Position numbers and translations under genes: made by a program. A stretch of DNA of 64,000 nt, taken from assembly GCF_964204865.1 (NCBI RefSeq), contig NC_135257.1:18352001-18416000 (forward strand), in the 5' to 3' direction. The notes beneath the pieces are model-generated. The model had not been told where the DNA came from, ran no database searches, and was given only the letters and a program-made list of their open reading frames with translations. Origin of the DNA: Styela clava (taxonomy: Eukaryota). Positions 4,076-63,874 of this stretch are shown here, one piece after another. The stretch's first letter is position 1; each line of letters begins with the position of its first letter.

Positions 4076-4489
4076 ATCTAAATGATTATGCCATTGATAC
4101 ATATTTCAGGTCGGGTCAACACGGCCTTCAAACTTATCGGCATTTTAGTATACTTCATATTATAAATCTTAGCGCCATGCAATCGTTAGCGCTCCCTAGT
4201 GACAATATGTCAAATAAAATATGATTCTCAAGGTGGCGATAGACGAGGGTGTTACTTTTGATTGACAGGTGCCCAAATTTTATGTGGTGGGCCTGATATG
4301 TCATGTTATCGTAGTGGAGCGTTTGAGGAATACAGGTCACAAATTATAAAAAAAAAACATCATTTATTAGCACATTGCGAGTATTGGCCATTGGGTATAT
4401 TTTATACATCTGTTTGTGCTAATTACTGTTTTGCGATTGAGTCTGAATTTGTTTTGTTCGCACGTCTGCACGTTGTAGATATTAAAAGG

Positions 4490-4948
4490 ATGTCTGACAC
4501 TGGCGATCGAAAATCAAGCTGTGGCTCATCCTTAACTTGTCATGCTTTAAGGTTAAGACCCGGCCAGAACATCACAGATGAAATTGTCAGATATGTGAAA
4601 GAAAATGAACTGAAAGCTGCGTTTATTCTAACATGCTGTGGAAGCGTCACTAAAGCAACTATTCGCATGGCGAATGCCAGTTCAACAAACACAAACGAAA
4701 TAAAAACTCTTGATGGGAGACACGAAATTACATCTCTTGTCGGAACTGTTTGTAATTCTGGTGATTTCCATCTTCATGTCACACTGGGTGATGTAGCAGG
4801 AAACGCTGTAGCAGGTCACGTCATTGGGGATATGGAGGTTTTCACAACTGCTGAGATTGTACTTGGTGAATGCAACGGCCTGTCGTTTACCAGAGAATTT
4901 GACAAAGAAACAGGATTTGATGAATTGTTAATCGGGAAACGAAATTGA
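4490..4948 (+). CDS. PPC/DUF296-domain protein, single coding exon, 152 aa (often auto-annotated 'GlmU-like' in animals)
   Basis: Motifs LRLRPGQ, AFILTCCGS, GRHEITSLVG, HLHVTLGD..G..V.GHV and VFTTAEIVL...F.REFD..TGFDEL. Likely start is ATG 4490, 11 nt after an acceptor-like TAG; the upstream part of ORF 4262 looks non-coding. Confidence 0.9.
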   Translation: MSDTGDRKSSCGSSLTCHALRLRPGQNITDEIVRYVKENELKAAFILTCCGSVTKATIRMANASSTNTNEIKTLDGRHEITSLVGTVCNSGDFHLHVTLGDVAGNAVAGHVIGDMEVFTTAEIVLGECNGLSFTREFDKETGFDELLIGKRN

Positions 4949-19955: not shown

Positions 19956-20639
19956 TCACTTGAAAGAAATAAAGCAAAGTCGAATTGTCAATTCCAAATC
20001 TGGTTGGAAATTTGCCGGATACTTTATCATATCAATAACTTCTATGTTACATTTTTCCCCAAATGTGCCCTGAAGGTTCTCAATCGTGATGCAGTGAGGT
20101 GGACCTTTGCACTTTGACATATCATAAGTGATAGATTCCATCAAGATTTTTGCTTTTGGCTTCATCAGACTGAAGATTAAGTCTGTGTATTTTTGCTGAG
20201 TGGGAATATTTATCGCGACGTAACTTCCGCGGTCCCAGAACCCATCAAACTGACCACATAATTCTGGTTTTAGATCAAAAATATCACCTCTGTAAATAGT
20301 AATATTCTTCTCCTTACATTTGTAAACCACAAGACAGCTATCAGAACAGGTTGATTCTGAGTATGTCAAGTTATTTTCTTCAAAAAATGCTTCGATTCCA
20401 ATTTTTGAAAACTCAAGACCGACCACCTCTAATCCTTTTTCTTCCAAGAAAATCAAATCCATCGTTTTTCCACAAAGTGGAACGAAAACACGTCCAGTCG
20501 TTCCATTTTCAAAAAGTTTCTCAAAATGTTTCACTAGCAACTGACTGTAATTTTTCCTATGAAATTTCGGGTCTTGATCTGCTGACCATTTCCATTCATC
20601 TACGGCCACTTCTCTCCTAGGTAAAGGATTAGTTTCCAT
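19956..20639 (-). CDS. TPMT: Thiopurine S-methyltransferase-like, copy 1 (227 aa, uninterrupted CDS)
   Basis: RVFVPLCGKT (SAM motif I), VVGLEFS, IYRGDIF, FDGFWDRGSYVAI, GPPH. Confidence 0.92.
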   Translation of the reverse strand: METNPLPRREVAVDEWKWSADQDPKFHRKNYSQLLVKHFEKLFENGTTGRVFVPLCGKTMDLIFLEEKGLEVVGLEFSKIGIEAFFEENNLTYSESTCSDSCLVVYKCKEKNITIYRGDIFDLKPELCGQFDGFWDRGSYVAINIPTQQKYTDLIFSLMKPKAKILMESITYDMSKCKGPPHCITIENLQGTFGEKCNIEVIDMIKYPANFQPDLELTIRLCFISFK

Positions 20640-21716
20640 GTTTGTAGAATATAGTGATATTTTACTTTCTAAGGTCTGTAATTATATATAAAATTAAGTC
20701 AATATATATGAATATTAATAAGACTTAGCACCTAGTTATGAATGAAGAGCTTTCTTGACCTACATTATTGAAGTTATTCATATCATGAAATACTATATTG
20801 ATCACTGGGGTTAACATAGGTAAATAATCGTGAAAAACATCGTCAATTCCTTTGAGTGCGATCAGAGTTATGTGCGTATAAGCCTTAGTTTGGCAACTTT
20901 TTTTTCGAGTTTTAAACTCTGCTTATATGTGAGGATATACGGTAGTACTATTACTCTTTTTTACTAAATCATGATATGAATACAAGACAAGGAAAAATAT
21001 ATGTCAAATCATCCTGCATAGTGCAATTATTTAGAAAAAAGGTTTACATATTTAGTGCATGTAAATACAGTAGAATCAACCAAAAATTTCAAACACAGAT
21101 ATTACTTCATAGTCTATGAAATGGAAATAAAATTTGAAAACTTAAAACATATGAAACTGCTTTTGAAGAAAATTGGACTTTATATTCATATTCTATAGGA
21201 AGCATTTTGACTAGTAAACGATTCAGAGTGAGACAAGTATTTATTACAAATACTTATAAAAAGCAAGCAATTTAGAAATATACAGGTGTCCAAAAAGTTT
21301 CTCCCGATTTTATAGTATCAACAAATAAAAATTTCTTTGTCTTTGTATATTAATCGATCTTATTGTGCTTGTAGTTCTCATTTATTTTATTTATAAAATA
21401 AGATTTATTTTGAATTAAAATTGGTATTACTATAAAATACACCGACATTATTTGGACAAAAACGTGAATAAATTTGATTTTAATAAGAAATAGACGTACA
21501 CCTTTTGATTGGCTGCACTACCCTTCCCACAATCAAAACAACAAACATTAATTTTACTTAATAAATCAGAATGATACTACAGAATGTTGACTAATTTATG
21601 TTCTTTAATAAATTAACATGTTAATCAGAAACCAGGATTAAAAGTAAAGTTGTAAGTTGTTCAACACTTCATGACTCTCTATATTATATCTGATTCACAA
21701 TGGTCAATTTAAAACT

Positions 21717-22412
21717 TTATTTCATTGAAAGAAGACAATAGGGAAGAGTCATAATCATATCTCCTGCATTGAAAACGGGATGTGCGAGCATGGTCATTGT
21801 ATCAACAACTTTAATTTCACATTTTGACCCAAAAGTGCTTTGTAAATTTTCTAAGGTTATGCAATGTGGAGGTCCACCGTATCTCGACGTGTCATAAGTG
21901 AAAGTCTCCATCAATATTTTCGCCTCTGGTTTCATCAGTTGTAAAATAATATCAGCATATTTCTGCTGAGTAGGGATATTGATTGCGACATAACTTCCAC
22001 GATCCCAAATGCCATCAAATTGGCCACAGACATCTGGGTTCAAATTAAACATATCACCTCTGTAAATAGTGATATTTTTCTCGTTGCATTTGTACTGCAC
22101 CAAAGGCTGATTTACAACATCCATTTTCTTGTAGGTCAAATTGTTGTCTTTGAAAAACCCTTCAACTCCGATTTCTGAGAACTCCAATCCAACAACTTCA
22201 AGCCCTTTATCAGCTAGAAATATCATGTCCAGAGTTTTTCCGCACAGCGGAACAAAAACGCGGCCTGTTTCACCATCGGCAAATAAGCAGTCGAAGTGTT
22301 TCACCAGCATAGGCGCGTATTGTGTCCTATGAAAAGGTGGGTTTTCATCTTCATTCCATATCCACTCTGTAGGAGCGAGTTCTCCCTTCTGCATCTCTTT
22401 TGATTCTGACAT
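21717..22412 (-). CDS. TPMT: Thiopurine S-methyltransferase-like, copy 2 (231 aa, uninterrupted CDS)
   Basis: RVFVPLCGKT, VVGLEFSE, FDGIWDRGSYVAI, GGPPH; visibly closest to copy 1. Confidence 0.92.
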   Translation of the reverse strand: MSESKEMQKGELAPTEWIWNEDENPPFHRTQYAPMLVKHFDCLFADGETGRVFVPLCGKTLDMIFLADKGLEVVGLEFSEIGVEGFFKDNNLTYKKMDVVNQPLVQYKCNEKNITIYRGDMFNLNPDVCGQFDGIWDRGSYVAINIPTQQKYADIILQLMKPEAKILMETFTYDTSRYGGPPHCITLENLQSTFGSKCEIKVVDTMTMLAHPVFNAGDMIMTLPYCLLSMK

Positions 22413-22950
22413 TTTAAATATAACTAATAATTAACTGTTCTATCTGTTTTAAAATAAGCATCAACATATTCATAGTATTATTACAGAAAATATATGCATA
22501 TTTTTTTGTCTTACGAATAAGATATTTTTTTATTGATCAGGAGGTAAAAGTAAACAATATTTTAGCGATTATTATATACAATATTAATTTATACTAAAAT
22601 TAATCATAAAATTGATCAGATTCTTGAAATGAGCAGTTGTTTGCTCAAAGTAGGTATAATATTGACTTGCAGCACATAGAAGCAGACAATTTTAAAGATT
22701 TATATGACCACAACAAAGTCAGAAATTTCTAAAAATGGAAGAAGCAATTATTGACATAAAATCTGATCTAAATAGAATGTTGATACTGATAAATTGCACA
22801 AATAGTGATATGTAAAAAAAAATGATTCATTATACAGCTCAGAGTCACTGTTAAACTACAATAAAGCTAATAGTTGAGGCGGCTGTTCAGAACAAATAAA
22901 ACTTGTGGAACTCATACACACTCATATGTGGAAAAATTGAAGGTGATCTA

Positions 22951-23159
22951 CAGGGTGTCCAAAAAGTTCTGCCCGATTAGATAGCATTACCAATTGCAAA
23001 TTTGAATAAATTTTGCTGAATGATAAATGGGGGCTACAATATTGAACATCTATAACATCACGTTAGAAACAGGTTGACTATAAATCTTTTTTAAAATTAA
23101 AAAAAATAACATTTGATTATAAAGACTTTATAATCAGACAAAACTTTTTGGACACCCTG
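22951..23159. mobile_element. Tc1/mariner MITE (a related left end also at ~21283)
   Basis: TIR CAGGGTGTCCAAAAAGTT flanked by TA on both sides. Confidence 0.85.
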
Positions 23160-23357
23160 TATTATGGCCAGAACAATATCATTCTAAATAGATAGAGCAA
23201 AATCTGTCAAACACACTCTACTAATTTCTGTGCTAGATTGCAATAAAGTTGTATCAAACAAATTATGCTTCATGTCAAAAAGATGGCCAAATATTTCGGA
23301 ACGGAAGAAATTAAACTTCCATTGATAATCTCCATGCCTAAGTTCAGGACTGTACTT

Positions 23358-24071
23358 TTACAGCGAACCTTTAACTTTTGGCTCGAGTAAATATATATTA
23401 ATTGTCCAATCCATTTTCAAATTCGGTATTGGAGGTGTAGATTCTCTTGTTTCAAGCAATTCATAAGAGTATCTTTTTCCTAAAGTTTCTTTCAAAGAAT
23501 CTTCAGATAAGTAGTGTGGTGGACCAGCATACTTTGTGCCATCATAATAAGCCCCCTGTAGAAGATATTTTGACATGTTTTTCATTAATTTGAACATGAT
23601 TTCTGCATATTCCAACCTCTGGCCCATATTTATAGCAATAAAACTTCCACGATCCCAAAATGCATCAAACTGTCCACAAATTTCTGGTTTCAACTTGAAA
23701 AAATCTCCGCGGTAAAGTGTTATGGCTTTATCCAGACATTTGTAAACAACAAATGGTTCATTTTCCAAATCATACTTCGTAAATTTCAAGTTATTTTCTG
23801 CAAAAAATGATTCCACTGCAACTTCTGAAAACTCTAAACCAACAACATCATGTCCTAAATCAGCAAAATAAATGAGATCCAATGATTTACCACAGAGTGG
23901 AATGAATATCCGTCCAGTTTTGCCCTCGCTAAAAAGGCGGTTGTAAAATTTTTTGACAGTGGAATGGACCTCTTGCACATGAAAAGGCGGATCCTTCTGG
24001 CCAGACTTCCAAAAATAATCGTCCCAACCATTTGTTGTAAGGTTGGTTCTTGATTCCTCATTGCTTGACAT
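23358..24071 (-). CDS. TPMT: Thiopurine S-methyltransferase-like, copy 3 (237 aa, uninterrupted CDS)
   Basis: W..FW....PPFH, RIFIPLCGKS, GHDVVGLEFSE, FDAFWDRGSFIAI, YAGPPH. Confidence 0.92.
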   Translation of the reverse strand: MSSNEESRTNLTTNGWDDYFWKSGQKDPPFHVQEVHSTVKKFYNRLFSEGKTGRIFIPLCGKSLDLIYFADLGHDVVGLEFSEVAVESFFAENNLKFTKYDLENEPFVVYKCLDKAITLYRGDFFKLKPEICGQFDAFWDRGSFIAINMGQRLEYAEIMFKLMKNMSKYLLQGAYYDGTKYAGPPHYLSEDSLKETLGKRYSYELLETRESTPPIPNLKMDWTINIYLLEPKVKGSL

Positions 24072-26693: not shown

Positions 26694-28540
26694 TCAAGAT
26701 GCTAAAGTCTCTGATGCATTTGCATCAAGCAGTCGTGCTTTTAACAAGGGCATTTCTTTTTTCTTCCATCTTCTTCTGCAACCTCTTGGAAGATAACGAC
26801 AAACATCCAAATTAAATTCTTGGATGTTTGAAAAACAGGTCAGCATTTCTAAAACCATTCCTGAGATGTTGGTATGGCACATGGAAAGAATAGAAATTGA
26901 TTGCCAATACAGAATATCTGCACAGGAACATAGTCGTGCATTCAAATTATCATAATAATCGAGATGAATTTCTTTTAAGGATCCACTCAGATGAAGCAAT
27001 AGAGCAGATAGACTTGATCCATAGAATCCTGATATGTCAAGAACTTCGATTTTAAGACAGTTCTCCAGAGAGGGGATCAAGCAGGCGACATCCATTCTAC
27101 GATTACTCAAATTGACGTTCCTTATATTGCGACTTTTTGACATCATTAAAGCAAGCATTTGATTATCTGGTTCGTTAGCAGTACAATATTCATTAATGGA
27201 TAAATCCAAATCTTCTAGCTCTGGAAATTCAACTTCCAGACAGCCTCTGGTATCCAAATGCATGTTCGTTAAGTGTAGCACCCTCAAATGTTTTAAACTT
27301 TTTATATTGGATATGTTGAAAGATCGTCCACATTCAATTTTAAGAATGTTAAGATTCCTCAAGTGGATGAGCGAAATTTGTATATCACGTGGAAATTCGG
27401 GATTGAATAATTCAAGATGTGTTAGTTGTTCGCCAGCTCCTAGAAAAATTGATTTAATCAAAAACCTTTAATAATGGAGTTACACGAAGATGGTTCAAAT
27501 ACAGGCGAAATATGTGGAAATTAAACAGGATATCTGAGCTGATTTACATATTTAAAATAAGATAAGACGGTCCAATCACATGGCGACACACAGCCTCTCG
27601 TCCGGTTACGAGTTCATGTCGGGTATGGAATTAGTTAGACAGTTATTTTGTTTATGGATGCATGGACTTGATGATGGATGAACCTGTAACCGACCAGTAG
27701 TCATGTGAACTACCCCCTGTGGTGGCGAGGAGCCTAGCAATCCTCTCGCACATAAAGTTTCCCCCTGTGAATTTGAACCTACAAGTCCTGAAATCCATGC
27801 ATGGTAATCAGAGATGTGGTGGCGAGTGTAAAGGTATCCCTAACGCTTAGCGCGATGCGCCATGCCATCTTATTAGTATATATGTATGATAAAAAAACAT
27901 ACAAAAACAAAAAAATCGCAAGACCTGACAAAATTTTTCTGATATCAGATGTAGGAATTGATGTGTGAGATATACAAAGTTGTTGGAGCGATGACGAATG
28001 TCGATCTGCTACAGTTTGTAGGCAATTCTTTGTTGAGATTGAACCACATCTTTGAATTGAAAGTATTAGTATCTTTCTTGCATAATTCAAAACTGTTTTT
28101 ATAAGAACTGGAGCAATCATGGTAAACCCACTGCATGTTAAACTTTCCACAGAACTAAAGTGAGCTTCTGCCATTAATTCAAATGACTTTATGTTCTTTT
28201 TGAATGCTTGTTGACTTTTCACCAAATATGGAGCGAAATGTAAATCTGACCATAAAAATGGTATATTAGCAGTATTTCTCCAATGTCTGCAAACCTTAGA
28301 TAATCTTAGAAGGCAGGGTAACATTCCTGTATCCTGCTTTACTAGATATTCAAATATTTGTGCCAAAACTTCTGCAGGCAAATATGCCCATTCACTTTGG
28401 ACTTGTTTTACATGTTTATGACATAATTGTGTTTCTCCAGTCTCAGGCTGTGATACAATCTCCCTCAAGTTCTTTCGTCTTTTTTTCAGTGGTGGCATTT
28501 CATTGTTGTTTTCATCTAGCTGGATCTTTGTTTTATTCAT
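26694..28540 (-). CDS. FBXL6: F-box/LRR protein, FBXL6-like, 2 exons (28540-27925, 27439-26694), 453 aa
   Basis: F-box WAYLPAEVLAQIFEYLV...MLPCLLRLSKVCRHW...LW, followed by LRRs and a C-terminal FNLDVCRYLPRGCRR resembling FBXL6. A phase-1 GT-AG intron joins the two ORFs in frame. Confidence 0.85.
27525..27870 (-). mobile_element. SINE copy in the FBXL6 intron
   Basis: Full-length diverged match to 16636-16981. Confidence 0.8.
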
Positions 28541-40710: not shown

Positions 40711-43700
40711 ATGTTACGCAGTAACGTACTTTTTGTGTTGTTTATGAGATTTATCTGCTCCACAGCAGAAGGTAAGTGTTGCATCTTATAATTTAACTAA
40801 AGCGCATTTATAATTTGTAAGTTTTTCTGACAATTTATAAGTATATTCAAAAATTGTCATAAGATTTTTATTAGATAAACATATTTAAATATAAACTGGC
40901 GAGCCAGGTAAGTGTAACGTTTTAAGTTACATTTTATTAACAATATCTAGAGTGTAACAAATGCAAAAAATAGAAAACAATAAAAATCGTGCCAAATTCA
41001 AATTTAATCACAATCTCAACAAATTCCTTGGCAGCATCAGGAGGGCCAGATTGAATTTCCCAACGTGCGCCCATGTCAGAACTAGAGTCATTTATTGGAC
41101 ACAAAATGCACATATAGATTGTTTTGTTATTATGTTGTTGTTGGTATTTTTCTTCTTTCTGTTGTGAAAAACTCGTTTAATACAAACGAGTTTAATACAA
41201 AAACCAATTGCTTCTACTAAAGTACTTCTGTCATAGTCAGCACTAATCACACGATTCCTGGATAAAAATAGAAATAATTCAATTTTATCTTTCCATGTAT
41301 TTGTACTTATTCGTTTTTTTTTATTTTCTCGTAAATTTCGAATCAATTACTGTAATCAAGATAGCCGATAACTTTTTGTTCTGAATTGAAATGTCGAATA
41401 TTCCTATTATTATGTAGGCCGACGCGATGTTTCAGGAAAGCCAGCTTTTTTAAATTTGAAACACGAATTACGCAATGGTTTTTGACCCGGAACTTGCACA
41501 TATAACATAATCAATTCACGAAGACCAACTAGGGCGTTATCAGAGAAATTGATTGTAGCATTGAAATGAACGTATTTTTATTTGCAGAAAACCAGCACAT
41601 CTGTCGCGAAAAGGGCGGATTCATTTATGATCGGAGATGTTTTTGGGTCATAATTGATCTCACTTTGGAATTCACAAATGCACAGGGAGAAGCGAAGTGC
41701 AATGAATTTGATACTTCACCGGCCAACATATACGATATACAGCACTTTAACCAACTTTTAAGTTATGGACGTGAAAATAGACCCGGGGATACCCTAATAG
41801 TGCATCTAGGAATGAAATACGATCCAAGTGTAAGAAATATTAATCTTTTCTCCTTCATTTGAAAATAGCGATCTGGAACTCTATAAATGACATTTTGTTT
41901 TTCTATATAGATGAGTATTGACATATTTATATGATTATGCAAACGAAAAGTGATATAGAAAAAATTTATTCGTTTTGAAGGGAACAAAATGGATTCAACA
42001 TTTATAATGTTATATAACAGAATATTTTAATCATAATGATTCCGCATGCAGATTTACGTAAGGAGAAAATAATGGTACAGGCAATTCTTTGGTAAAAATA
42101 CATGAAAACAGAAGTTTATTGTCATAGAATAATAAATATCATTTTCATAATAGAATAAAGTGTTGCAAAATCACGATGGGTCGATCTCATACTTGCCGGA
42201 TTCGGTGTGGTCGATCGCGCCAGCAGAACAAGAAATATACACCGACGTAGCGATGCGTATTGCGAATCCTCCAGTGGACCCTGATGAAGGCCTTGGGATA
42301 GTTAGCTCCATATGGACATGTGAGGGTGTTATATGCGAAACTGAACGTAAGTTGTTGACATTTATGTTACATGAATCAAACAAATGAAAACAAAATTGAT
42401 TAATTGAAATTGTAAAAAAATCGTTCTTGCAGTTTAAGTTTGCGCTTGTGATATTCGTGCCCTTTTTATTTGCTTATGGTTTTTACATTTATGCAATCGT
42501 CAGCCTTACAATTAAAAGTGCGCTCACATTATTATGCTTTGGCTCAACTTTCAAATATATGTAATGAATAAATGAACGAAGATTCTATTAATTTAGGTCA
42601 ATATTTCGTTAAAAAGCAAGCTTGAAGCTTCATGCATATTAAACTAAACTTTACAAAATCTACCAATAGATTGTGGTTCCCTAATGGGTAATTTTGCGAA
42701 AAAAATTACAATTTCTTTAATTATTGGACCAATCATTTATGAATATTAAGTACTCAAAAATGCAACTGTCGCTTGGAGAACTGTTATCTCTAATATTTTG
42801 GAAATTTTGTCTGGCTCACGTAAAAAGTTCCATGGGGAATTTATAATGTTCGAGTCTAAATAATCGATCTTTGCACTCAACTGTATTAGTGCGTGTGCCT
42901 TTCTGTTCATGTTGTGTGTGAACAAAGTACCAAGGTTTCACCGGCATATTCTATTGAATTGTGCAATACAATACTATAGTAATCAAGTAATATATAACGA
43001 TTTCTTTCTGTTACTATACCTTGGACACAATTATTCAATCTGTCCAATCGCATTTAATACTGATTCTCTTCCGTTTACAGAACTCAGTTGCACTCCTCTT
43101 CAAATAAACATGGAAACCCAAACGCGTACCTGTCCCGAAGACTCGCTTAGTTGCACGTAAGTATGAGAATGAGAATGTTAAAAAGTCGTGTCAGTGACAA
43201 ATGTTATGAGGGACATGGACATTGCTTAAGGAGTAATTATAAGTAACGAGATAAAGATCTAAAGATCGATAAGTAACAAACAAACAAACGAGAATATCGG
43301 TCGGAGACCGAAGACTTATCGATCGAAAGTCAGGGGATCCCCCAAAACAGATCTCGCGGCGTGTATCCTTCGCTCTGTCTCAATAGCGTGGAAAATTTCT
43401 CGAAGGACACTTGCGCATCGCGACGACGTCAAAGTTACAAGAGGGATATGGACAATGCTTAAAGATTATTCACGAGATACAATCTAGCGGTGTGTATTCT
43501 TCGCTCTGACTCACTAGCGTGAAAACTTGCGCATCGCACACACACGCACACCCAACGCGAATCAAAAATCTCTCGCTTTGCAAAAATCGTTCTCTCGATT
43601 TGCAAGAATCCAGATCTTTTCATCACTAATTAATTAACGAGAATATCGGTCAGAGACCCAAGACTTATCGATTCAAAGTTAGGGGATTTCCAAAACAGCG

Positions 43701-46700
43701 CTCTTACTCCATAGTGACACCTTGTGCCCATCACTAATTAAATAATACCTCGCTAATTATACAACATAATTCATCCGAAATCAATAGGCTTCTGGTCCGA
43801 GATTTGATGAATGCACATGCAAAATCTGAAGCAGATTCAATCTCGCTTTCGTGAGATATCGCGTGCCTCTAACAGACAGACAGACAAACAGACAAATACC
43901 TATCAACATAATTACCGATTAAAATCGATAAGTAATAACTCGATAATTATACAACATAATTCATCCAAAATCAATAGGCTTCTGGTCCGAGATATGATGA
44001 ATGCACTTGCAAATTCTGGAGCAGATTCAATCTCGCTTTCGTGAGATATCGCGTGCCTCTAACAGACAGATGTTATGAATTATTTATTCACGAATCTGAG
44101 TAATACAAAGTCTGGAATCTAGTTTAAAAATTGAGGCCATGTATAGGTACCTTAATTATATTGGTCTGTACAGAATGCGTAATTAATCAATTGAATTCGC
44201 AAATATTCATAAATATCCATCAAAGTCCATTCAAAATATACTAGGTAAGAAGACTCATGATTCGGTTTATACGCTGCATGTATAAGTTTGCAAAATATTG
44301 GATTAAAACTTTACTTATATATATTTCCTTTCTTCCAGTATATCTTGCAAACCTGGTTTTGTCTTTGACGACGAAAGCAGCGTCATTACACTGACGTGTC
44401 AAGATAATCTTGACTGGGATGGAGAAGTGCCAACTTGTAAACGTATGTAATTTACACATCCTTTACACAACTTGATGTAAAGTCGGCGAACAACCATAAT
44501 ATACTACATATTGGTACACACACTTTTTTTTAACTATAAAGTGACTTATCTGTGGTGTGATATCTCACTTCTCTATTACTTTACTCAGAAAAGTATTTTG
44601 CAACAGTCCAACTGACACAATTTTTTTCCATAAATTTTCACTTATGATAAAGAAGATATTACTATGTTCTTTTTCTCAGTTGCTGTGTGCCCAGAGCTCA
44701 GTTTCGATGGACAGCCAGGACTTATGCATTGTACTGGGAATGAATATCAGGATGAATGCAAGTGAGTGGAGTTTCCCGCCAACTATCTTTAAAATTCTAA
44801 TTAACCAGCTGATATAGAATAATTTTTAACAATAATTTTTTTTCAGCTTCGTCTGTGAGTCTCACAAACAACTCAAAGGACCAAGAAAAATAATCTGCAA
44901 TGACGACAGGACATGGTCAGGAATACAACCAACCTGTGAAGGTGAGAATGTAAAGTGTTGATTGGAAGATTTGAAACATTGCTAATTTTTTATGTTTGTT
45001 CATTTTTTACCAATGAACAGTCGAAAGCCACCGCGTAGTTATTAGGGAAATTGAGAGACTTTCAAACTGAATATCGTGAACGTATTTTGTTGAAATCGTT
45101 TGGGGCAAATTTTCCTTTTTTTTAAGTTATGAACTATGAACATTTTTAGTGTGTTACATTAATGCTATGTCATAGTGACCGTTCAAAGTTGTAACACTTG
45201 TTGGACTTTTTTACGTTCACATCATATTTCGTTAATTATTCATTTGTATTTCAGACGTTATTTGCGAACCAATAGATTTTCCGGCGGAACAAGGAACAAT
45301 GGATTGCACGGATGGATACAACTATGCAAGCTACTGCAGGTGTGTTGATTGAATATTTTATCTGAATGATGCTTCTACTGTCTTATACACATGTTTTATT
45401 GATGATTTGATAACGCGTATTAGTTATAACCGGTTGACAAACAAGCCGTTATCGCTTGTTATATTTCATTTTAACCTTGTATGTGACCTCGTACAAACAT
45501 GAAAGCATTACATGTCAATTGTAATCGCGACCTACGATCTATGTTATAAGTTCAAATCTTTGCCTGAGGCAAATCAGATCAAATGTTCAACAAAGCACCA
45601 TCTAATGCCTTTCTTCAACTTGATAAAATATATTCAGGAATGTGAAATAGCAATAATTTAAACCGCATTGCATTACCTCGAAAAAAAAGTAAGATTCTAA
45701 AGAAAACAATCAATCAATCTAATACGTTACATATAGATGCTGGCTGTGACGAATGCACGGCTTCAAAGTGTAATATGACGTCATGTTTTTCGTAGAATGA
45801 CTTAGAACCTTTGCACTAAGACGAGATGTTAATGTCCATCTCATACTTTATACCTATGGTAATGCTTATGCAAATTCTTTATTTGAATTGATTTAAAAAA
45901 AAAATCTTATAAAAACATTAGCAAAATAACAACATTTACTTTTTTAATAGTTTCTACTGCAAATCTGGATTGCAAAGATGGGGAGCAAAGAAAGTAATTT
46001 GTCTTAGGACAGGAGAATGGTCGGAAGAACCACCTACTTGCAAAGGTAAATTTCTTCAATTATTGATATTATAATTCTCAAACAATTTAAAGTCAGATCA
46101 ATTTTGAAATTAACTCATGGTTTAAACTGAAGCCCGTTAAGAAATGCTATTAGAACTTATCAGTATTTTAAACAAGTAGGTAATGAGTCGCTCACGAATG
46201 TTTAACTACCTGTCCGGATCAGGAAACAGACCTGTGAGCGACCGGAACTGTAAATTGAAAACTCTAGATAGATTAACTGGAGAAAACTCTAGATAGATTA
46301 TCTGGATTATATGGTAGTTGTGTCGAGTCATTGTTTTGAACAAAAATTTTAAATATTAAATAAATAATGTTTCACCACTGAAGCATGGCACCATGATATG
46401 ATTATAACATACAATACCAAGATTTATGGTTCAACTTTTTTTTCAGAATATGATCCTAAATGTCCTGATGCCCACAAACACACTTCATGTCCTGACAGCA
46501 ACTGTGCAGTTAATGCTGATTGCGATGACGACAAGAAGCTTTGTTGTCCTACAAAATGTGGAACTTCTATTTGTTGGGATTTACCGAAACGAACAATTTC
46601 TAGAGGTGAGAATATTTCCAAATGCGTTCTCTTGAAAGTTCAAATTTGTAATAGAACCATTTGAAAATAACTTTGTGTTTATTTATGTTTTAATGCAACA

Positions 46701-48518
46701 TCCAATTATCGGAGCGGGGAGAGGGGCGGGCTAGTAGTATGTTTAACCTTAATCCTACGATCTAGCATAGCGTTTCGTAGTGGATATCTCAATATGCCTT
46801 GTGTGGTCGTTGAGGGCTTGTATGGGATTTCCATATGTTAAACTTAACTTTACGATCTAGCTACGTGTGTGTGTGTGTGTGTAGGGAGAGTTAATGAGAG
46901 CGTATCTCCATATCAAAAAAACCTTTTACGGTACAGCTTTGTGTGTGTATTTGGGGTGGGGGGTGATATCTTCTTATGATAAAACTTATCCTTGTAATTC
47001 ATTCTTCTTCGGCAATATTCGCACGATAAATCTAACGATGTAGCCGTTTGTGTGTATGTTGGTGCAGGGGGGGGGGGGGGGGGGGTAGCTTTGTGGGTGG
47101 GGTCTTCATATTATCCCATTTTTTCTTAAAATTCATATCAGTGGCAACTTATTTCACAAAGGTGATATCTCAATATGAATATTTTTGTATTTGTTAAATA
47201 ATTTTATTTACTAAGCGAGTTCTCAGATTCAAACAAATGATCTCATTTCATTTTTAATATAATTTCATTGAGTCGTGATAATAAACTTAGTAAAATTGTA
47301 AAGTTAGCTAAAATTTTATTACAGAAGCGCTTCTATGGATAGTACTTGGTGGATTAGGCAGAAAGCAATGCCCTACAAACTGCTTGAGAAACGCCTGTGG
47401 GACTGCACGATGTCCAGCAAATCTCAATGCACAGTGTAGAACATCATGCAATGGTTGCCGAGCTCACTTTTACGATTTTAATCAAGAGGTTACCGAAAAT
47501 TGTAAGTTTATACTTAATATTTATAATATGATTAAAACCCGATTTTCACGGTGTTACAGAACAGCGTTATAACCTGAAACTTCTGGTTGCGCATGGCTCT
47601 GAACTTAGTAGAATATAGTATGCAAATTAGAAAGCTATAGTGTCTGCGGAAACTCTTGATATTTTCTATTACTCATAGCTAACTTGGTTCCAAGTATGTA
47701 GTACAAAATATGTGAGATAGAAATCTATAATCTTCGTGTGCTTTATTTTGTGTTTTTAGATTTCCTATTCCTCACAAACTTTTTAAGAATTCCAAGACCA
47801 TGTCGGATTTTTTAAATACGACTCTTGAAAGTTCAAGACAATGTAATATTATTTGAATACGATTTCCCGTATTGTTAAATATTGAACATAATAAAAAAAA
47901 GTATTTTATTGATATTATTTAACCTCGATTTTGTTTATTTAATCCAGGTCAATGTCCACGTGGTTATGTCGTGCCAAACTGTAATCAACAGCAATGTGCA
48001 AACTACAGATGCATTACAAACGGCCACCATATATCTTACTACCATGCCAGTCAATACTACAACCCCAACATACTATGTCGTATGAGCAGCTGTGGTGGAT
48101 GTTTTCCCCAATTCTATGATAGACGTGGACGAAGAATCAATTGCAGACAAATATTGCAATATGTATCAAATCCAGGAATTCCAGGTAATAATAATGTGGC
48201 AGGTTTAAACAAAATCAAATGATATATAAATGATTGCTTGAGTTTCGTATTTGAATATCCATTTTGAATAAACAATATCGAATCTTTAAATTATCCTATA
48301 TCAAACCTATCAAAGCATCTGAAATACATGAATAAATAAACCTTTAGATGACGTCCAGAATCTTTCATTATTTTTGATATTGCAGAAGCGTTGTATTAAA
48401 CAACTCATTTAAAATAGCACCTGTGGAAAGGTTTATAATTTTGATGTCTGAAAAAAACATTTTAATATAATTTTACTTTATCACACTTTCAGTGGCAAAT
48501 GTACCAATTGCCGGATGA
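40711..48518 (+). CDS. Secreted C-type lectin - 3xCCP - WAP - Cys-rich mosaic protein, copy A, 13 exons, 543 aa: 40711-40771, 41588-41829, 42154-42346, 43081-43156, 44339-44442, 44680-44761, 44847-44941, 45255-45339, 45951-46045, 46447-46605, 47325-47501, 47948-48184, 48493-48518
   Basis: All introns are GT-AG and the 1632 nt frame stays open. Signal peptide MLRSNVLFVLFMRFICSTAE; CTLD (C..GFIYDRRCFWV..C..ANIYD..HLGM..W..GVICE); three 6-Cys CCPs ending W...PTC; 8-Cys WAP (CP..C..C...DC....LCC...CG...C); two C..CxGC...FYD repeats; AATAAA near 48814. The last exon is the least certain. Confidence 0.85.
43210..44069. mobile_element. Tandem/concatenated HINE-like units in lectin intron 4 (duplicate at ~62143-63002)
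   Basis: Repeated AACGAGAATATCGGTC.GAGACC.AAGACTTATCGAT and repeated ..GCACATGCAAA..TCGTGAGATATCGCGTG..CAGACAGA blocks; same family as 28593-28840. Confidence 0.7.
46700..47110 (+). repeat. Degenerate G/GT-rich minisatellite with a 19-nt poly-G (47067-47085)
   Basis: Recurrent AAC..T..TACGAT.TAGC..GTGTGTG..GGG units. Confidence 0.6.
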
Positions 48519-59603: not shown

Positions 59604-62600
59604 ATGTTACGCAGTAACGTACTTTTTGTGTTGTTTCTGGGATTTATCTGCTCCACAGCAGAAGGTAAGTGTTGCATCTTATAATTTAACTAAAGCGCAT
59701 TTATAATTTGTAAGTTTTTCTGACAATTTATAAGTATATTCGAAAAAATGGCATAAGATTTTTATTAGATAAACATATTTAAATATAAACTGGCGAGCAA
59801 TGTAAGTGTAACGTATTAAGTTACATTTTATTAACAATATCTAGACTAGAGTGTTACAAAAGCAAAAAATAGAAAACAATAAAAATCGTGCTAAATTTAA
59901 ATTTAATCGCAATCTCAACTAATTCCTTGTGATATTTTTTGGTGAAATCATCAAAATATGGTTTAAGTTGGGCTCGGCAGCATCAGAAGGGCCAGATTGA
60001 ATTTCCCAACGTGGGCCCATGTCAAAACCAGAGTCATTTATTGGACACGAAATGCACATATTGATTGTTTTGTTATTATGTTGTTGTTGGTATTTTCTTC
60101 TTTCTGTTGTGAAAAACTCGTTTTGTGCATTAAATACAAGAACCAATTGCTTCTACTAAAATACTTCTGTCATAATTACCACTAATCACACGATTCCTGG
60201 ATAAAAATAGAAATAATTCAATTTTATCTTTCCATGTATTTGTACTATTTCGGTTTTTTTTATTTTCTCGTAAATTTCAAATCAATTACTGTAATCCAGA
60301 TAGCCGATAACTTTTTGTTCTGAATTGAAATGTCGAATATTCCTATTAATATGTAGGCCGACGCGATGTTTCAGGAAAGCCAGCTTTGCAACACGAATTA
60401 CGCAATGGTTTTTAACCCGGAACTTGCACATATAACATAATCAATTCACGAAGACCAACTAGGGCGTTATCAGAGAAATTGATTGTAGCATTGAAATGAA
60501 TGTATTTTTATTTGCAGAAAACCAGCACATCTGTCGCGAAAAAGGCGGATTCATTTATGATCGGAGATGTTTTTGGGTCATAATTGATCTCACTTCAGGA
60601 TTCACAAATGCACAGGGAGAAGCGAAGTGCAATGAATTTGATACTTCACTGGCCAACATATACGATATACAGCACTTTAACCAACTTTTAAGTTATGGAC
60701 GTGAAAATAGACCCGGGGATACCCTAATAGTGCATCTAGGAATGAAATACGATCCAAGTGTAAGAAATATTAATCTTTTCTCCTTCATTTGAAAATAGCG
60801 ATCTGGAACTCTATAAATGACATTTTGTTTTTCTATATAGATGAGTATTGGCATATTTATATGATTATGCAAACGAAAAGTGATATAGAAAAAATTTATT
60901 CGTTTTGAAGGGAACAAAATGGATTCAACATTTATAATGTTATATAACAGAATATTTTAATCATAATGATTCCGCATGCAGATTTACGTAAGGTGAAAAT
61001 AATGGTACAGGCAATGCTTTGGTAAAAATACATGAAAACAGAAGTTTATTGTCATAGAATAAAAAATGTCATTTTCATAATAGAATAAAGTGTTGCAAAA
61101 TAACGATGGGTCGATCTCATACTTGCCGGATTCGGTGTGGTCGAACGCGCCAGAAGAACATGAAATATACACCGACGTAGCGATGCGTATTGCGAATCCT
61201 CCATTGGACCCTGATGAAGGCCTTGGGATAGTTAGCTCCATATGGAAATATGAGGGTGTTATATGCGAAACTAAACGTAAGTTGTTGACATTTATGTTAC
61301 ATGAATCAAACAAATGAAAACAAAATTGATTAATTGCAATTGTAAAAAAATCGTTATTGCAGTTTAAGTTTGCTCTTGTGATATTCGTGCCCTTTTTATT
61401 TGCTTATGGTTTTTACATTCATGCAATCGTCAGCCTTACAATTAAAAGCGCGCTCACGTTATTATGCTTTGGCTCAACTTTCAAATATATGTAATGAATA
61501 AATGAACGAAGATTCTATTAATTTAGGTCAATATTTCGTTAAAAAGCAAGCTTGAAGCTTCATGCATATTGAACTAAACTTTACAAAATCTACCAATAGA
61601 TTGTGGTTCTGAATGGATAATTTTGCGAAAAAAATTACAATTTCTTCAATTTTTGGACAAATCATTTATGAATATTAAGTACTCAAAAATGCAACTGTCG
61701 CTTGGAGAACTGTTATCTCTAATATTTTGGAAATTTTGTCTGGCTCACGTAAAAAGTTCCATGGGGAATATATAATGTTCGAGTCTGAATATTCGATCTT
61801 TGCATTCAACTGTATTAGTGCGTGTGCCTTTCTGTTCATGTTGTGTGTGAACAAAGTACCAAGGTTTCACCGGCATATTCTATTGAATTGTGCAATACAA
61901 TACTATAGTAATCAAGTAATATATAACGATTTCTTTCTGTTACTATACCTTGGACACAATTATTCAATCTGTCCAATCGCATTTAATACTGATTCTCTTC
62001 CGTTTACAGAACTCAGTTGCACTCCTCTTCAAATAAACATGGAAACCCAAACGCGTACCTGTCCCGAAGACTCGCTTAGTTGCACGTAAGTATGAGAATG
62101 ATCCAATTTGTTAAAAAGTCGTGTCAGTGACAAATGTTATGAGGGACATGGACATTGCTTAAGGAGTAATTATAAGTAACGAGATAAAGATCTAAAGATC
62201 GATAAGTAACAAACAAACAAACGAGAATATCGGTCGGAGACCGAAGACTTATCGATCGAAAGTCAGGGGATCCCCCAAAACAGATCTCGCGGCGTGTATC
62301 CTTCGCTCTGTCTCAATAGCGTGGAAAATTTCTCGAAGGACACTTGCGCATCGCGACGACGTCAAAGTTACAAGAGGGATATGGACAATGCTTAAAGATT
62401 ATTCACGAGATACAATCTAGCGGTGTGTATTCTTCGCTCTGACTCACTAGCGTGAAAACTTGCGCATCGCACACACACGCACACCCAACGCGAATCAAAA
62501 ATCTCTCGCTTTGCAAAAATCGTTCTCTCGATTTGCAAGAATCCAGATCTTTTCATCACTAATTAATTAACGAGAATATCGGTCAGAGACCCAAGACTTA

Positions 62601-63874
62601 TCGATTCAAAGTTAGGGGATTTCCAAAACAGCGCTCTTACTCCATAGTGACACCTTGTGCCCATCACTAATTAAATAATACCTCGCTAATTATACAACAT
62701 AATTCATCCGAAATCAATAGGCTTCTGGTCCGAGATATGATGAATGCACATGCAAAATCTGGAGCAGATTCAATCTCGCTTTCGTGAGATATCGCGTGCC
62801 TCTAACAGACAGACAGACAAACAGACAAATACCTATCAACATAATTACCGATTAAAATCGATAAGTAATAACTCGATAATTATACAACATAATTCATCCA
62901 AAATCAATAGGCTTCTGGTCCGAGATATGATGAATGCACATGCAAATTCTGGAGCAGATTCAATCTCGCTTTCGTGAGATATCGCGTGCCTCTAACAGAC
63001 AGATGTTATGAATTATTTATTCACGAATCTGAGTAATACAAAGTCTGGAATCTAGTTTAAAAATTGAGGCCATGTATAGGTACCTTAATTATATTGGTCT
63101 GTACAGAATGCGTAATTAATCAATTGAATTCGCAAATATTCATAAATATCCATCAAAGTCCATTCAAAATATACTAGGTAAGAAGACTCATGATTCGGTT
63201 TATACGCTGCATGTATAAGTTTGCAAAATATTGGATTAAAACTTTACTTATATATATTTCCTTTCTTCCAGTATATCTTGCAAACCTGGTTTTGTCTTTG
63301 ACGACGGAAGCAGCGTCATTACACTGACGTGTCAAGATAATCTTGACTGGGATGGAGAAGTGCCAACTTGTAAACGTATGTAATTTACACATCCTTTACA
63401 CAACTTGATGTAAAGTCGGCGAACAACCATAATATACTACATATTGGTACACACACTTTTTTTTAACTATAAAGTGACTTATCTGTGGTGTGATATCTCA
63501 CTTCTCTATTACTTTACTCAGAAAAGTATTTTGCAACAGTCCAACTGACACAATTTTTTTCCATAAATTTTCACTTATGATAAAGAAGATATTACTATGT
63601 TCTTTTTCTCAGTTGCTGTGTGCCCAGAGCTCAGTTTCGATGGACAGCCAGGACTTATGCATTGTACTGGGAATGAATATCAGGATGAATGCAAGTGAGT
63701 GGAGTTTCCCGCCAACTATCTTTAAAATTCTAATTAACCAGCTGATATAGAATAATTTTTAACAATAATTTTTTTTCAGCTTCGTCTGTGAGTCTCACAA
63801 ACAACTCAAAGGACCAAGAAAAATAATCTGCAATGACGACAGGACATGGTCAGGAATACAACCAACCTGTGAAG
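59604..63874 (+). CDS. Lectin-CCP mosaic gene, copy B (runs off the window end); exons 59604-59664, 60518-60759, 61084-61276, 62010-62085, 63272-63375, 63613-63694, 63780-63874
   Basis: Near-identical to copy A exons 1-7 at an offset of ~18.9 kb. Splice sites are intact and there are no stops. Confidence 0.87.

Follow-up and report, generated by a model that had tools for sequence, protein, structure and literature searches.

A predicted secreted protein family of Styela clava joins an atypical C-type-lectin head and a sushi stalk to a WAP-type tail with two copies of an eight-cysteine domain

A 64,000-nucleotide stretch of the Styela clava genome (contig NC_135257.1, positions 18,352,001 to 18,416,000 of the forward strand; hereafter the window) contains, at 40711-48518 on the + strand, a thirteen-exon gene for a 543-residue mosaic protein. 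From the N-terminus, this protein comprises a signal peptide, an atypical C-type-lectin head, a stalk of three sushi domains (also called complement control protein or CCP domains), a divergent WAP-type module and two copies, Xa and Xb, of an eight-cysteine domain that we call X. We hold this anatomy to be almost certain. The gene belongs to a family of about 15 loci whose heads vary and whose tails are constant, and the X domain recurs in proteins outside this family. As to function, the reading that we prefer, and offer tentatively from the domain content, is that of a soluble recognition molecule in which a variable head would be combined with a constant anti-protease or antimicrobial tail.

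A publicly predicted gene of thirteen exons

A phmmer search with the exon 12 peptide against 1.84 billion representatives returned an identical RefSeq protein of 543 residues, XP_077971390.1 (P0001 in our numbering), which is annotated as 'uncharacterized protein LOC144425723 [Styela clava]'. The peptides of the 13 exons follow one another in the expected order in this public protein, each split codon giving exactly the residue predicted for it, and the whole-protein analyses reported here were made on this entry. A first reading of the window, made from the sequence alone and referred to below as the original prediction, had described the gene as hidden. This does not hold, since RefSeq already predicts the identical protein; the gene is publicly predicted yet unstudied. 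Its paralogues are automatically named 'E-/P-selectin-like' in RefSeq.

The other structural claims of the original prediction fared better. Checking each exon border one by one confirmed 13 exons with a single open frame, whose lengths total 1632 nt, that is, 543 codons and a stop. GT..AG ends are present on all 12 introns. The exons and the parts of the protein that they encode are as follows.

Exon 1, 40711..40771, +: start codon and signal peptide (XP_077971390.1 residues 1-20), 20 codons plus 1 base, phase-1 donor
Exon 2, 41588..41829, +: N-terminal half of the head with Cys26, Cys38 and Cys58, helices alpha1 and alpha2, and 'HLGM' replacing WIGL
Exon 3, 42154..42346, +: loop-bearing C-terminal half of the head, and the exon that varies most within the family
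Exon 4, 43081-43156, +: first half of sushi/CCP 1, 3 Cys
Exon 5, 44339-44442, +: second half of sushi/CCP 1, 3 Cys (Pfam Sushi 29.9 bits, E 7.6e-7)
Exon 6, 44680-44761, +: first half of sushi/CCP 2, 3 Cys
Exon 7, 44847-44941, +: second half of sushi/CCP 2, 3 Cys (Pfam Sushi 24.2 bits)
Exon 8, 45255-45339, +: first half of sushi/CCP 3, 3 Cys
Exon 9, 45951-46045, +: second half of sushi/CCP 3, 3 Cys (Pfam Sushi 25.6 bits)
Exon 10, 46447-46605, +: phase 1-1 exon with 8 Cys for a divergent four-disulfide module of WAP type
Exon 11, 47325-47501, +: short hydrophobic linker ALLWIVLGGLG and Xa, the first copy of the 8-Cys domain
Exon 12, 47948-48184, +: Xb, the second 8-Cys copy with a 14-residue insert, followed by a conserved C-terminal stretch
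Exon 13, 48493-48518, +: last 7 whole codons and TGA, protein end VANVPIAG (present in XP_077971390.1)

The outgoing intron phases are 1,0,1,2,1,2,1,2,1,1,1,1. All eight introns at domain borders are in phase 1, as had been predicted, so that every module is a symmetric 1-1 unit in the classical layout of exon shuffling. Of the four introns within domains, the one in the lectin head is in phase 0, and the three that split the sushi domains, always at the equivalent site, are in phase 2. The eighth cysteine of Xa is encoded by a codon that is split across exons 11 and 12.

The border of exon 13 was set by eye from the sequence. We also considered an alternative 3' end, in which read-through of the exon 12 donor would lead to a stop at 48220-48222 with an AATAAA downstream. 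This candidate was rejected, as loose ends of transcript contigs at 48184 and the RefSeq protein favour exon 13. Some read-through past the exon 12 donor is compatible with the contig depth, and the exon 13 ending is the favoured one.

No characterised protein and no publication on this architecture was found in protein and literature searches, which bears out the statement in the original prediction that none was known. The order C-type-lectin domain (CTLD), sushi, WAP and X did not appear outside S. clava in the protein searches, which miss unannotated tunicate genomes. With the whole protein or the head alone as query, the matches were restricted to S. clava paralogues and two shark C4BP proteins, the latter found via their sushi domains; distant relatives escape a word-based protein search. 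Pfam scans of the 12 outside proteins retrieved with exon 12 showed neither a lectin nor a sushi match. We further considered the gene amplified by the 'P-selectin' primers of PMC11988888. The forward primer has 0 matches in the window at ≤3 mismatches, and the gene studied there is thus not this copy.

Transcripts join the sushi stalk to the tail

Transcript contigs from four runs (X5, X6, X8 and X9) of one 2020 study were placed on 42250-48249 at 90% likeness. A fraction of 0.20-0.26 of the sampled words from a 7.9-kb stretch was found in the four runs, which matches the exon share of 1632/7901. Contig depth reaches hundreds to thousands in exons and about 0-50 in introns outside repeats. 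Contigs that lack the introns show spliced RNA, although the RNA label of the runs is a guess.

The joints between exons 3 and 4, 4 and 5, 5 and 6, 8 and 9, and 11 and 12 were seen in all four runs, including those that build CCP1 and link it onward (43156>44339 and 44442>44680, 4/4 runs). The sushi-to-WAP joint between exons 9 and 10 is present at a depth of about 650 in X5 and X8, and in a low-depth form, one base off, in X6 and X9. In the original prediction, separate genes for exons 1-9 and 10-13 had been named as the outcome that would undo the model; this is the joint that tests it. Exon 10 is joined to exon 11 in X6 and X8, with a matching loose end in X5 and X9. The links between exons 6 and 7, 7 and 8, and 12 and 13 are represented by loose ends only, whose letters match the neighbouring exon; the loose end at 48184 (X5 and X9) equals the start of exon 13 with 2 differing letters, as in paralogues ending VANLPI-. 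The joints between exons 1 and 2 and between exons 2 and 3 lie outside the read-mapped stretch and are taken from XP_077971390.1 only.

Two further observations concern these contigs. At 46602-46605, where the WAP exon ends, four contigs of X9 continue into letters that are not those of exon 11; they may represent a paralogue with a different downstream exon or an alternative splice. Intron 4, the phase-2 intron between exons 4 and 5, contains a repeated element. Across the repeats of intron 4 (43250-44070) and intron 5 (44460-44493), contig depth climbs to as much as about 11,600, and loose ends are numerous. The stretches 43739-43880 and 43929-44070 are 95% alike, and both recur in the next gene copy of the window (copy 2, below). 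These repeats are probably a transcribed short interspersed element.

The tail carries an eight-cysteine domain without a Pfam family

Exons 11 and 12 encode two copies of one domain of about 50 residues and eight cysteines (mutual match E 4e-4). The first loop is shortened in Xa, and Xb contains an insert of 14 residues. The phmmer search with exon 12 gave 13 matches, 12 of which are proteins outside the family (E 7e-31 to 5e-4). Their sources include a brittle star, sea stars, a sea cucumber, an acorn worm, amphioxus, a horsehair worm, a coral and a metagenome-assembled genome (MAG) of the Myxococcales.

An alignment of 13 rows (A1), made of Xa, Xb and one copy each from 11 outside proteins, has eight invariant columns, namely seven cysteines and one phenylalanine. 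The remaining cysteine is present in 12/13 rows; it is missing from one because the exon 11 row ends before its split-codon cysteine. The consensus reads CP.G.P...CL..PC..A.C...PNA.CR..YCGGC.A.FYD.....V.C, in which a conserved aromatic residue follows the CxxC; the domain is also written as CP..P..C..PC....C..P.A.C...YCGGC.A.F[YF]D..G..V.C. With the A1 profile, 25 more small proteins of 66-114 aa were retrieved, all of them without a precomputed Pfam domain and without an informative name.

No Pfam family was found for X. The outside proteins P0002, with eight copies, P0010 and P0011 have no Pfam match at all, and the scan of P0006 yielded a sub-cut-off zinc-finger row only. Exon 11 itself gave nothing in Pfam and exon 12 gave sub-threshold noise (Barwin 14.8 bits, CPL1-like 13.6). 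A PDB sequence search with A1 found no relative, with one antifreeze row at E 1, and our literature search found no description of the domain. The AlphaFold2 model of Xb has a mean predicted local distance difference test (pLDDT) score of 70.7, below 50 in the insert, and shows one short helix and a beta-hairpin region. It has no fold match: the best Foldseek hit has an E of 1.7, and VIA-align against 48,161 chains returned 3 rows at Z 2.0-2.1. One of these is the Nerita carboxypeptidase inhibitor, with 42 residues aligned at 24% identity. Atlas searches with exon 12 and P0002 found nothing in the useful range, the one match being a rotifer cluster with values of 0.77 and 0.75.

On these alignments, X is a widespread domain unmatched by Pfam and is not private to the Styela protein. 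The two cysteine-rich repeats that the original prediction left unnamed are related to each other, have no Pfam match and share their domain with 12 outside carriers.

In seven of these 12 proteins, X is accompanied by protease-inhibitor modules:

P0004 and P0005: X with Thyroglobulin_1 and Pacifastin
P0007: X with Thyroglobulin_1, WAP, TIL and PBP
P0008: X with six WAP modules
P0009: X with WAP and Pacifastin
P0012: X with Kunitz
P0013: X with Thyroglobulin_1, WAP and Antistasin

Of the remaining five, one has HYR only and four have nothing of note. P0008 is a transcript-derived protein of 972 aa that repeats a WAP-Xa-Xb unit. Residues 416-542 of XP_077971390.1 match it with 33% identity (E 9e-16), and the match runs into the next WAP of P0008. 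The repetition of this unit suggests that the Styela tail is one copy of a pre-existing, inhibitor-type cassette. Such X-domain compound proteins combine X with WAP, as the Styela protein does with its divergent WAP-type module; besides P0008 they include the amphioxus 'zonadhesin-like' XP_035679107.1, Saccoglossus XP_006815798.1, the Montipora 'thyroglobulin-like' XP_068730483.1 and the sea-star 'kielin/chordin-like' XP_038060050.1. In contrast to it, they have no CTLD or sushi head and consist of chains of Thyroglobulin_1, Pacifastin, TIL, Antistasin and Kunitz modules; none of them is characterised.

The one carrier of bacterial label, P0012 (MDD9966114.1, from the Myxococcales MAG), holds three X copies and two Kunitz domains, together with stretches that resemble, by eye, thrombospondin-type-3 aspartate-rich repeats. 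Its presence in this MAG would reflect either gene transfer or eukaryotic contamination of the bin.

Exon 10 probably encodes a divergent WAP-type module

The eight cysteines of exon 10, the central CC among them, are spaced as in WAP modules. Pfam WAP does not match it even at E 10, and PDB sequence searches with exon 10 or the profile of its paralogues (A3) found no WAP. We built a local hidden Markov model (HMM) on 17 WAP segments taken from Pfam-positive proteins; it gives exon 10 a score of 18.3 bits, compared with 12.8 bits for the best of 1000 shuffles. When the alignment of exon 10 paralogues was compared with the 17 WAP segments by hhalign, the probability was 92% (P 6.7e-7) and all 8 cysteines were aligned; the control with the X-domain alignment gave 0.3%. 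The exon also takes the same position as the WAP in the WAP-Xa-Xb cassette of P0008. The whole-protein AlphaFold2 model has a pLDDT of about 33 across this region. We call exon 10 a divergent WAP-type module on the strength of the cysteine pattern, the local HMM and hhalign, against the negative results of the Pfam and PDB searches.

In pairing sushi domains with a WAP-type module, the Styela protein resembles LEV-9 of C. elegans and Hasp of Drosophila, which are secreted WAP and CCP proteins with a synaptic role. If the Styela protein were a receptor-cluster organiser of this kind, it would be a secreted sushi and WAP scaffold that does not inhibit proteases. In LEV-9 and Hasp, the WAP is N-terminal to the CCPs, there is no CTLD and no X, and the genes are single-copy. 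The Styela protein has the opposite order, its WAP lying after CCP3 and before Xa and not immediately before a CCP. A multi-copy family with a variable CTLD head and abundant transcripts is also unlike a synaptic scaffold, and we regard this explanation as highly improbable.

An atypical C-type-lectin head in a protein without a membrane anchor

The head comprises residues ~22-166 and is encoded by exons 2 and 3. Pfam finds nothing in either exon singly or in the head of XP_077971390.1. The AlphaFold2 model, built on 7 paralogues, has pLDDT values of mostly 58-88 in the head. Its top Foldseek match as a whole is the lectin-EGF-2SCR fragment of E-selectin (4c16_A, E 4.3e-13, 322 columns). In VIA-align, all 50 rows listed are C-type-lectin domains, with Z 13.5-14.7 and 118-139 residues aligned, for example CEL-IV (3als_A, 137 residues) and clam SPL-1 (6m5m_A, 131). 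These rows span model residues 20-189, and 48/50 ranges stop by residue 170. Within its own genome, exon 2 has at least 146 matches (E ≤ 0.01), one of which (L013) reaches 21.9 bits with Pfam Lectin_C (E 3e-4), just below the cut-off of 22.6. The C-type-lectin fold of the head is thus confirmed at the level of the predicted model, supported by fold rather than by Pfam.

The head is atypical, as the original prediction had it. 'LGM' occupies the WIGL position, and the EPN, QPD and WND calcium and sugar motifs are missing in 8/8 family heads. Most family heads conserve four cysteines only (Cys26, 38, 58 and 162 in P0001 numbering). We read the four as the C0-C0' and C1-C4 pairs, so that the C2-C3 disulfide is missing. 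The present gene (copy 1) alone carries an additional Cys157 (WTCEG), which looks unpaired and has no counterpart in copy 2 or other paralogues. With this extra residue, the mature protein has 47 cysteines, an odd number.

The signal peptide (residues 1-20) is the most hydrophobic window of the protein (1.37) and forms a helix at residues 3-15 of the AlphaFold2 model. Outside it, the best 19-residue Kyte-Doolittle window of XP_077971390.1 reaches 0.81, and Pfam finds no EGF domain in the exons or the public protein, in line with the original claim that EGF and transmembrane segment are both absent. The stretch ALLWIVLGGLG of exon 11 was considered as a membrane segment and rejected, as it spans 11 residues only and the hydropathy stays below 1.6 in every window. 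Beyond its last cysteine, the protein extends for another 21 residues. It is predicted to be secreted and soluble.

The sushi stalk and the comparison with selectins

A single residue separates the head, which ends at 165, from CCP1, which starts at 167. Pfam PF00084 matches three stretches of XP_077971390.1 with 52.6 bits, and exons 5, 7 and 9 each exceed the Sushi gathering cut-off of 20.7 bits as single exons; exon 4 alone gives sub-threshold noise only. With six cysteines in each domain, the three predicted CCP domains are well supported. Head and stalk are acidic, with an isoelectric point of 4.4-4.5, whereas the tail is basic (9.0).

A CTLD followed by six-cysteine CCPs, which are of the selectin type, is the arrangement found at the N-terminus of selectins, and Foldseek matches the model best to E-selectin. 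Selectins are defined by four features. The six-cysteine CCP repeats are present here, and the other three, namely the calcium-sugar site (EPN/WND), the EGF domain and the membrane anchor with its cytoplasmic tail, are absent. Unlike selectins, the Styela protein is soluble by prediction and multi-copy and has a WAP-Xa-Xb tail. It is not a selectin, and the 'E-/P-selectin-like' names are misleading; the likeness to selectins and collectins extends only to a loose 'lectin head on a stalk'. Among secreted matrix proteins, the G3 domains of the lecticans aggrecan and versican also have a CTLD that leads directly into a CCP. Lecticans differ from the Styela protein in having EGF repeats before the CTLD, a single CCP and giant glycosaminoglycan cores, with no WAP or X tail.

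The stalk also poses the question whether the protein belongs to the complement system. Structure matches of the whole model obtained via the sushi domains include the complement regulators DAF, CR1 and factor H; as sushi matches these are generic. The closest functional precedent that we found for our preferred reading is CgCLec-CCP of the oyster, a characterised soluble lectin reported to bind both microbes and a MASP-like protease and to promote the cleavage of C3 (PMC8605247). As predicted for the Styela protein, it is secreted, and in both of these invertebrate proteins the CTLD leads directly into a CCP. In contrast, it comes from a different phylum, has one CCP, and a WAP or X tail is not mentioned in the abstract of PMC8605247. 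If the Styela protein acted as CgCLec-CCP does, it would be a lectin-pathway initiator or regulator, whose stalk docks a MASP- or factor-B-type protease and whose tail tunes it. In S. clava, MBL, ficolin, factor B and CR1 are reported to be expanded and highly expressed at metamorphosis, and the present family is not among the genes named in the passages of that study covered here (PMC7540406). A role as a complement component, which is a narrower version of our preferred reading of a recognition molecule with an effector tail and overlaps with it, is in our estimate rather unlikely.

A gene family with unequal evolution of head and tail

The gene is not a lone case. It is one of about 15 loci, 9 of which lie in a 160-kb cluster on the window's contig (18.39-18.55 Mb), with pairs on three other contigs. 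In the genome, exon 12 has 13 matches at ≥74% identity and exon 10 has 13 close ones; exons resembling exons 5-12 occur on contig C10. A second copy starts within the window:

Copy 2 (LOC120328110), 59604..63873, +: exons 1-7, located by tblastn of the exon peptides

Copy 2 continues beyond the window end, and its peptides are contained in the RefSeq proteins P0069-P0071. Several of the loci carry damage. Stops occur in exon 4, 9, 10 or 12 of four family loci, and two cluster loci, both also with stops, have no recognisable WAP exon. Among RefSeq isoforms, P0016 lacks Xa and P0018 lacks the tail.

Conservation is uneven along the gene. Compared with copy 1, distant cluster copies are 41-48% identical in exon 3 and 58-73% in exon 2, whereas exons 9-12 of cluster copies are mostly 84-100% identical, with one stop-bearing exon 9 copy at 61%. 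The mean pairwise ratio of replacement to silent substitution rates (dN/dS) in the family is 0.94 for exon 3, 0.43 for exon 2, 0.52 for exon 4 and 0.19-0.36 for exons 5-12. For this analysis, 10-14 copies were used per exon, and copies with stops or less than 85% coverage were dropped.

Copies 1 and 2 are 97.8% identical over 3978 columns of DNA. Exon 3 of copy 2 (61084-61275) is 87.5% identical to that of copy 1, with 8 replacement and 0 silent differences, compared with 3/2 in exon 2 and 1/0 in exons 4-7 together. Intron divergence between the two copies is 58/3121, or 1.86%. From this rate, 2.8 replacements would be expected at the 150 replacement sites of exon 3, as opposed to the 8 observed (Poisson P 0.008; Fisher P 0.0097). 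Between the two copies, divergence is 4.5% in intron 1 and declines along the gene until it is 0% in introns 5-6, and silent divergence in the family is lowest in exons 9-12. Both trends suggest that gene conversion of the 3' halves is likely.

The family structure bears on two further explanations. In the first, the protein is a structural or protective matrix component of the tunic, a mucus net or another extracellular matrix, and the copies serve dosage, not diversity. The head would then anchor the protein to a polysaccharide, the sushi domains would be spacers and the WAP-X tail would guard against proteolysis. The many near-identical tandem copies are in line with a dosage family, as are exon contig depths of hundreds to thousands in 4/4 runs, depth being a poor measure of expression. 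In addition, 'Kielin/chordin-like' proteins, an automatic name that P0004 also carries, are listed in a sea-star skeletal matrix proteome (PMC5460417), and WAP, CTLD and sushi proteins are frequent in invertebrate matrix proteomes, judging by the titles of such studies. A dosage family would, on the other hand, be expected to conserve its head, and exon 3 is the least conserved exon. Furthermore, XP_077971390.1 has no N-glycosylation sequon and no repetitive or low-complexity sequence of the matrix type. We judge a matrix function to be the leading alternative, unlikely on balance.

The second explanation takes the variable head as an individuality marker in self/non-self or gamete recognition, that is, in allorecognition or sperm-egg binding. 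Besides the variability of the head itself, the RNA contigs are of interest here, which carry three replacement differences from both genomic copies within 14 nt of exon 3. These differences may be alleles or come from another paralogue, the contigs having been placed at 90% likeness. In Ciona, a polymorphic CCP gene has been proposed as an individuality marker (PMC5465252). The Styela protein, by contrast, has no membrane anchor, the variation seen lies between paralogues and no partner gene was identified. Individuality recognition is in our estimate a very unlikely role.

Proposed function

We return to our preferred reading, in which a binding head is coupled to an inhibitory or antimicrobial tail. 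The original prediction already proposed such a coupling; we find it plausible, all the more so in view of the modules that accompany X in other proteins. In this model, the CTLD head, variable and without a calcium motif, would be the specificity element. The long-loop and beta3-beta4 part encoded by exon 3 is the ligand-binding part in C-type lectins, and as this loop-bearing half differs strongly between copies, the head of each copy probably binds a different ligand. The three sushi domains would serve as a stalk that might also offer a docking site. As the constant effector, the basic WAP-Xa-Xb cassette most likely binds or inhibits proteases, be they microbial or part of complement-type cascades in the animal itself, or else works as a cationic antimicrobial. 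That the protein is secreted, binds ligands, inhibits proteases and has an immune role is what we infer from its make-up.

Several points weigh against this reading. The link between X and protease inhibition is guilt by association. The X model is of moderate quality and matches no solved fold; the Nerita inhibitor row lies within the noise and is a weak lead, not evidence. The module of exon 10 is too divergent for Pfam to recognise as a WAP, and the WAP modules of LEV-9/Hasp-type proteins are not known to be inhibitors. With the sugar motif missing from the head, a 'lectin' activity is uncertain. Finally, a dN/dS near 1 in exon 3 would fit relaxed constraint as well as diversifying selection, and the exon 3 comparison of copies 1 and 2 is a post hoc test on a single pair that is confounded by gene conversion.

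If the reading of a recognition head with an effector tail is true, a lectin-sushi family with an inhibitor-type tail would represent a new design in innate immunity or matrix protection, in an animal that is among the closest invertebrate relatives of vertebrates. Soluble CTLD-sushi recognition proteins are already known, and the most original element here is the X domain family. Its repeated company with WAP, Kunitz, thyroglobulin-1, pacifastin, TIL and antistasin modules makes X a candidate new inhibitor family, and defining it would improve the annotation of proteins misnamed 'kielin/chordin-like', 'zonadhesin-like' or 'thyroglobulin-like'. In a bolder version, which we consider unlikely as it stands, X would be a new metazoan-wide protease-inhibitor or antimicrobial module, Styela would have fused one WAP-Xa-Xb inhibitor cassette to a CTLD-sushi head under diversification, and the animal would possess a germline repertoire of about 12 'targeted antiproteases', through which the same effector could be delivered to different microbial or self surfaces.

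Other features of the window

Three other regions of the window gave Pfam matches.

19956-24071, -: three tandem, apparently intronless open reading frames of 227, 231 and 237 aa, Pfam TPMT (thiopurine S-methyltransferase), E 3e-43 to 9e-46
4262-4948, +: 228-aa open frame with a strong Pfam match of 103.9 bits to PCC ('Plants and Prokaryotes Conserved')
26694-28540, -: neighbouring open frames, one matching F-box (49.2 bits) and the other matching LRR weakly

The PCC name is unexpected in an animal genome, and the frame may be part of a spliced gene. The two adjacent frames at 26694-28540 are probably one F-box/LRR gene.

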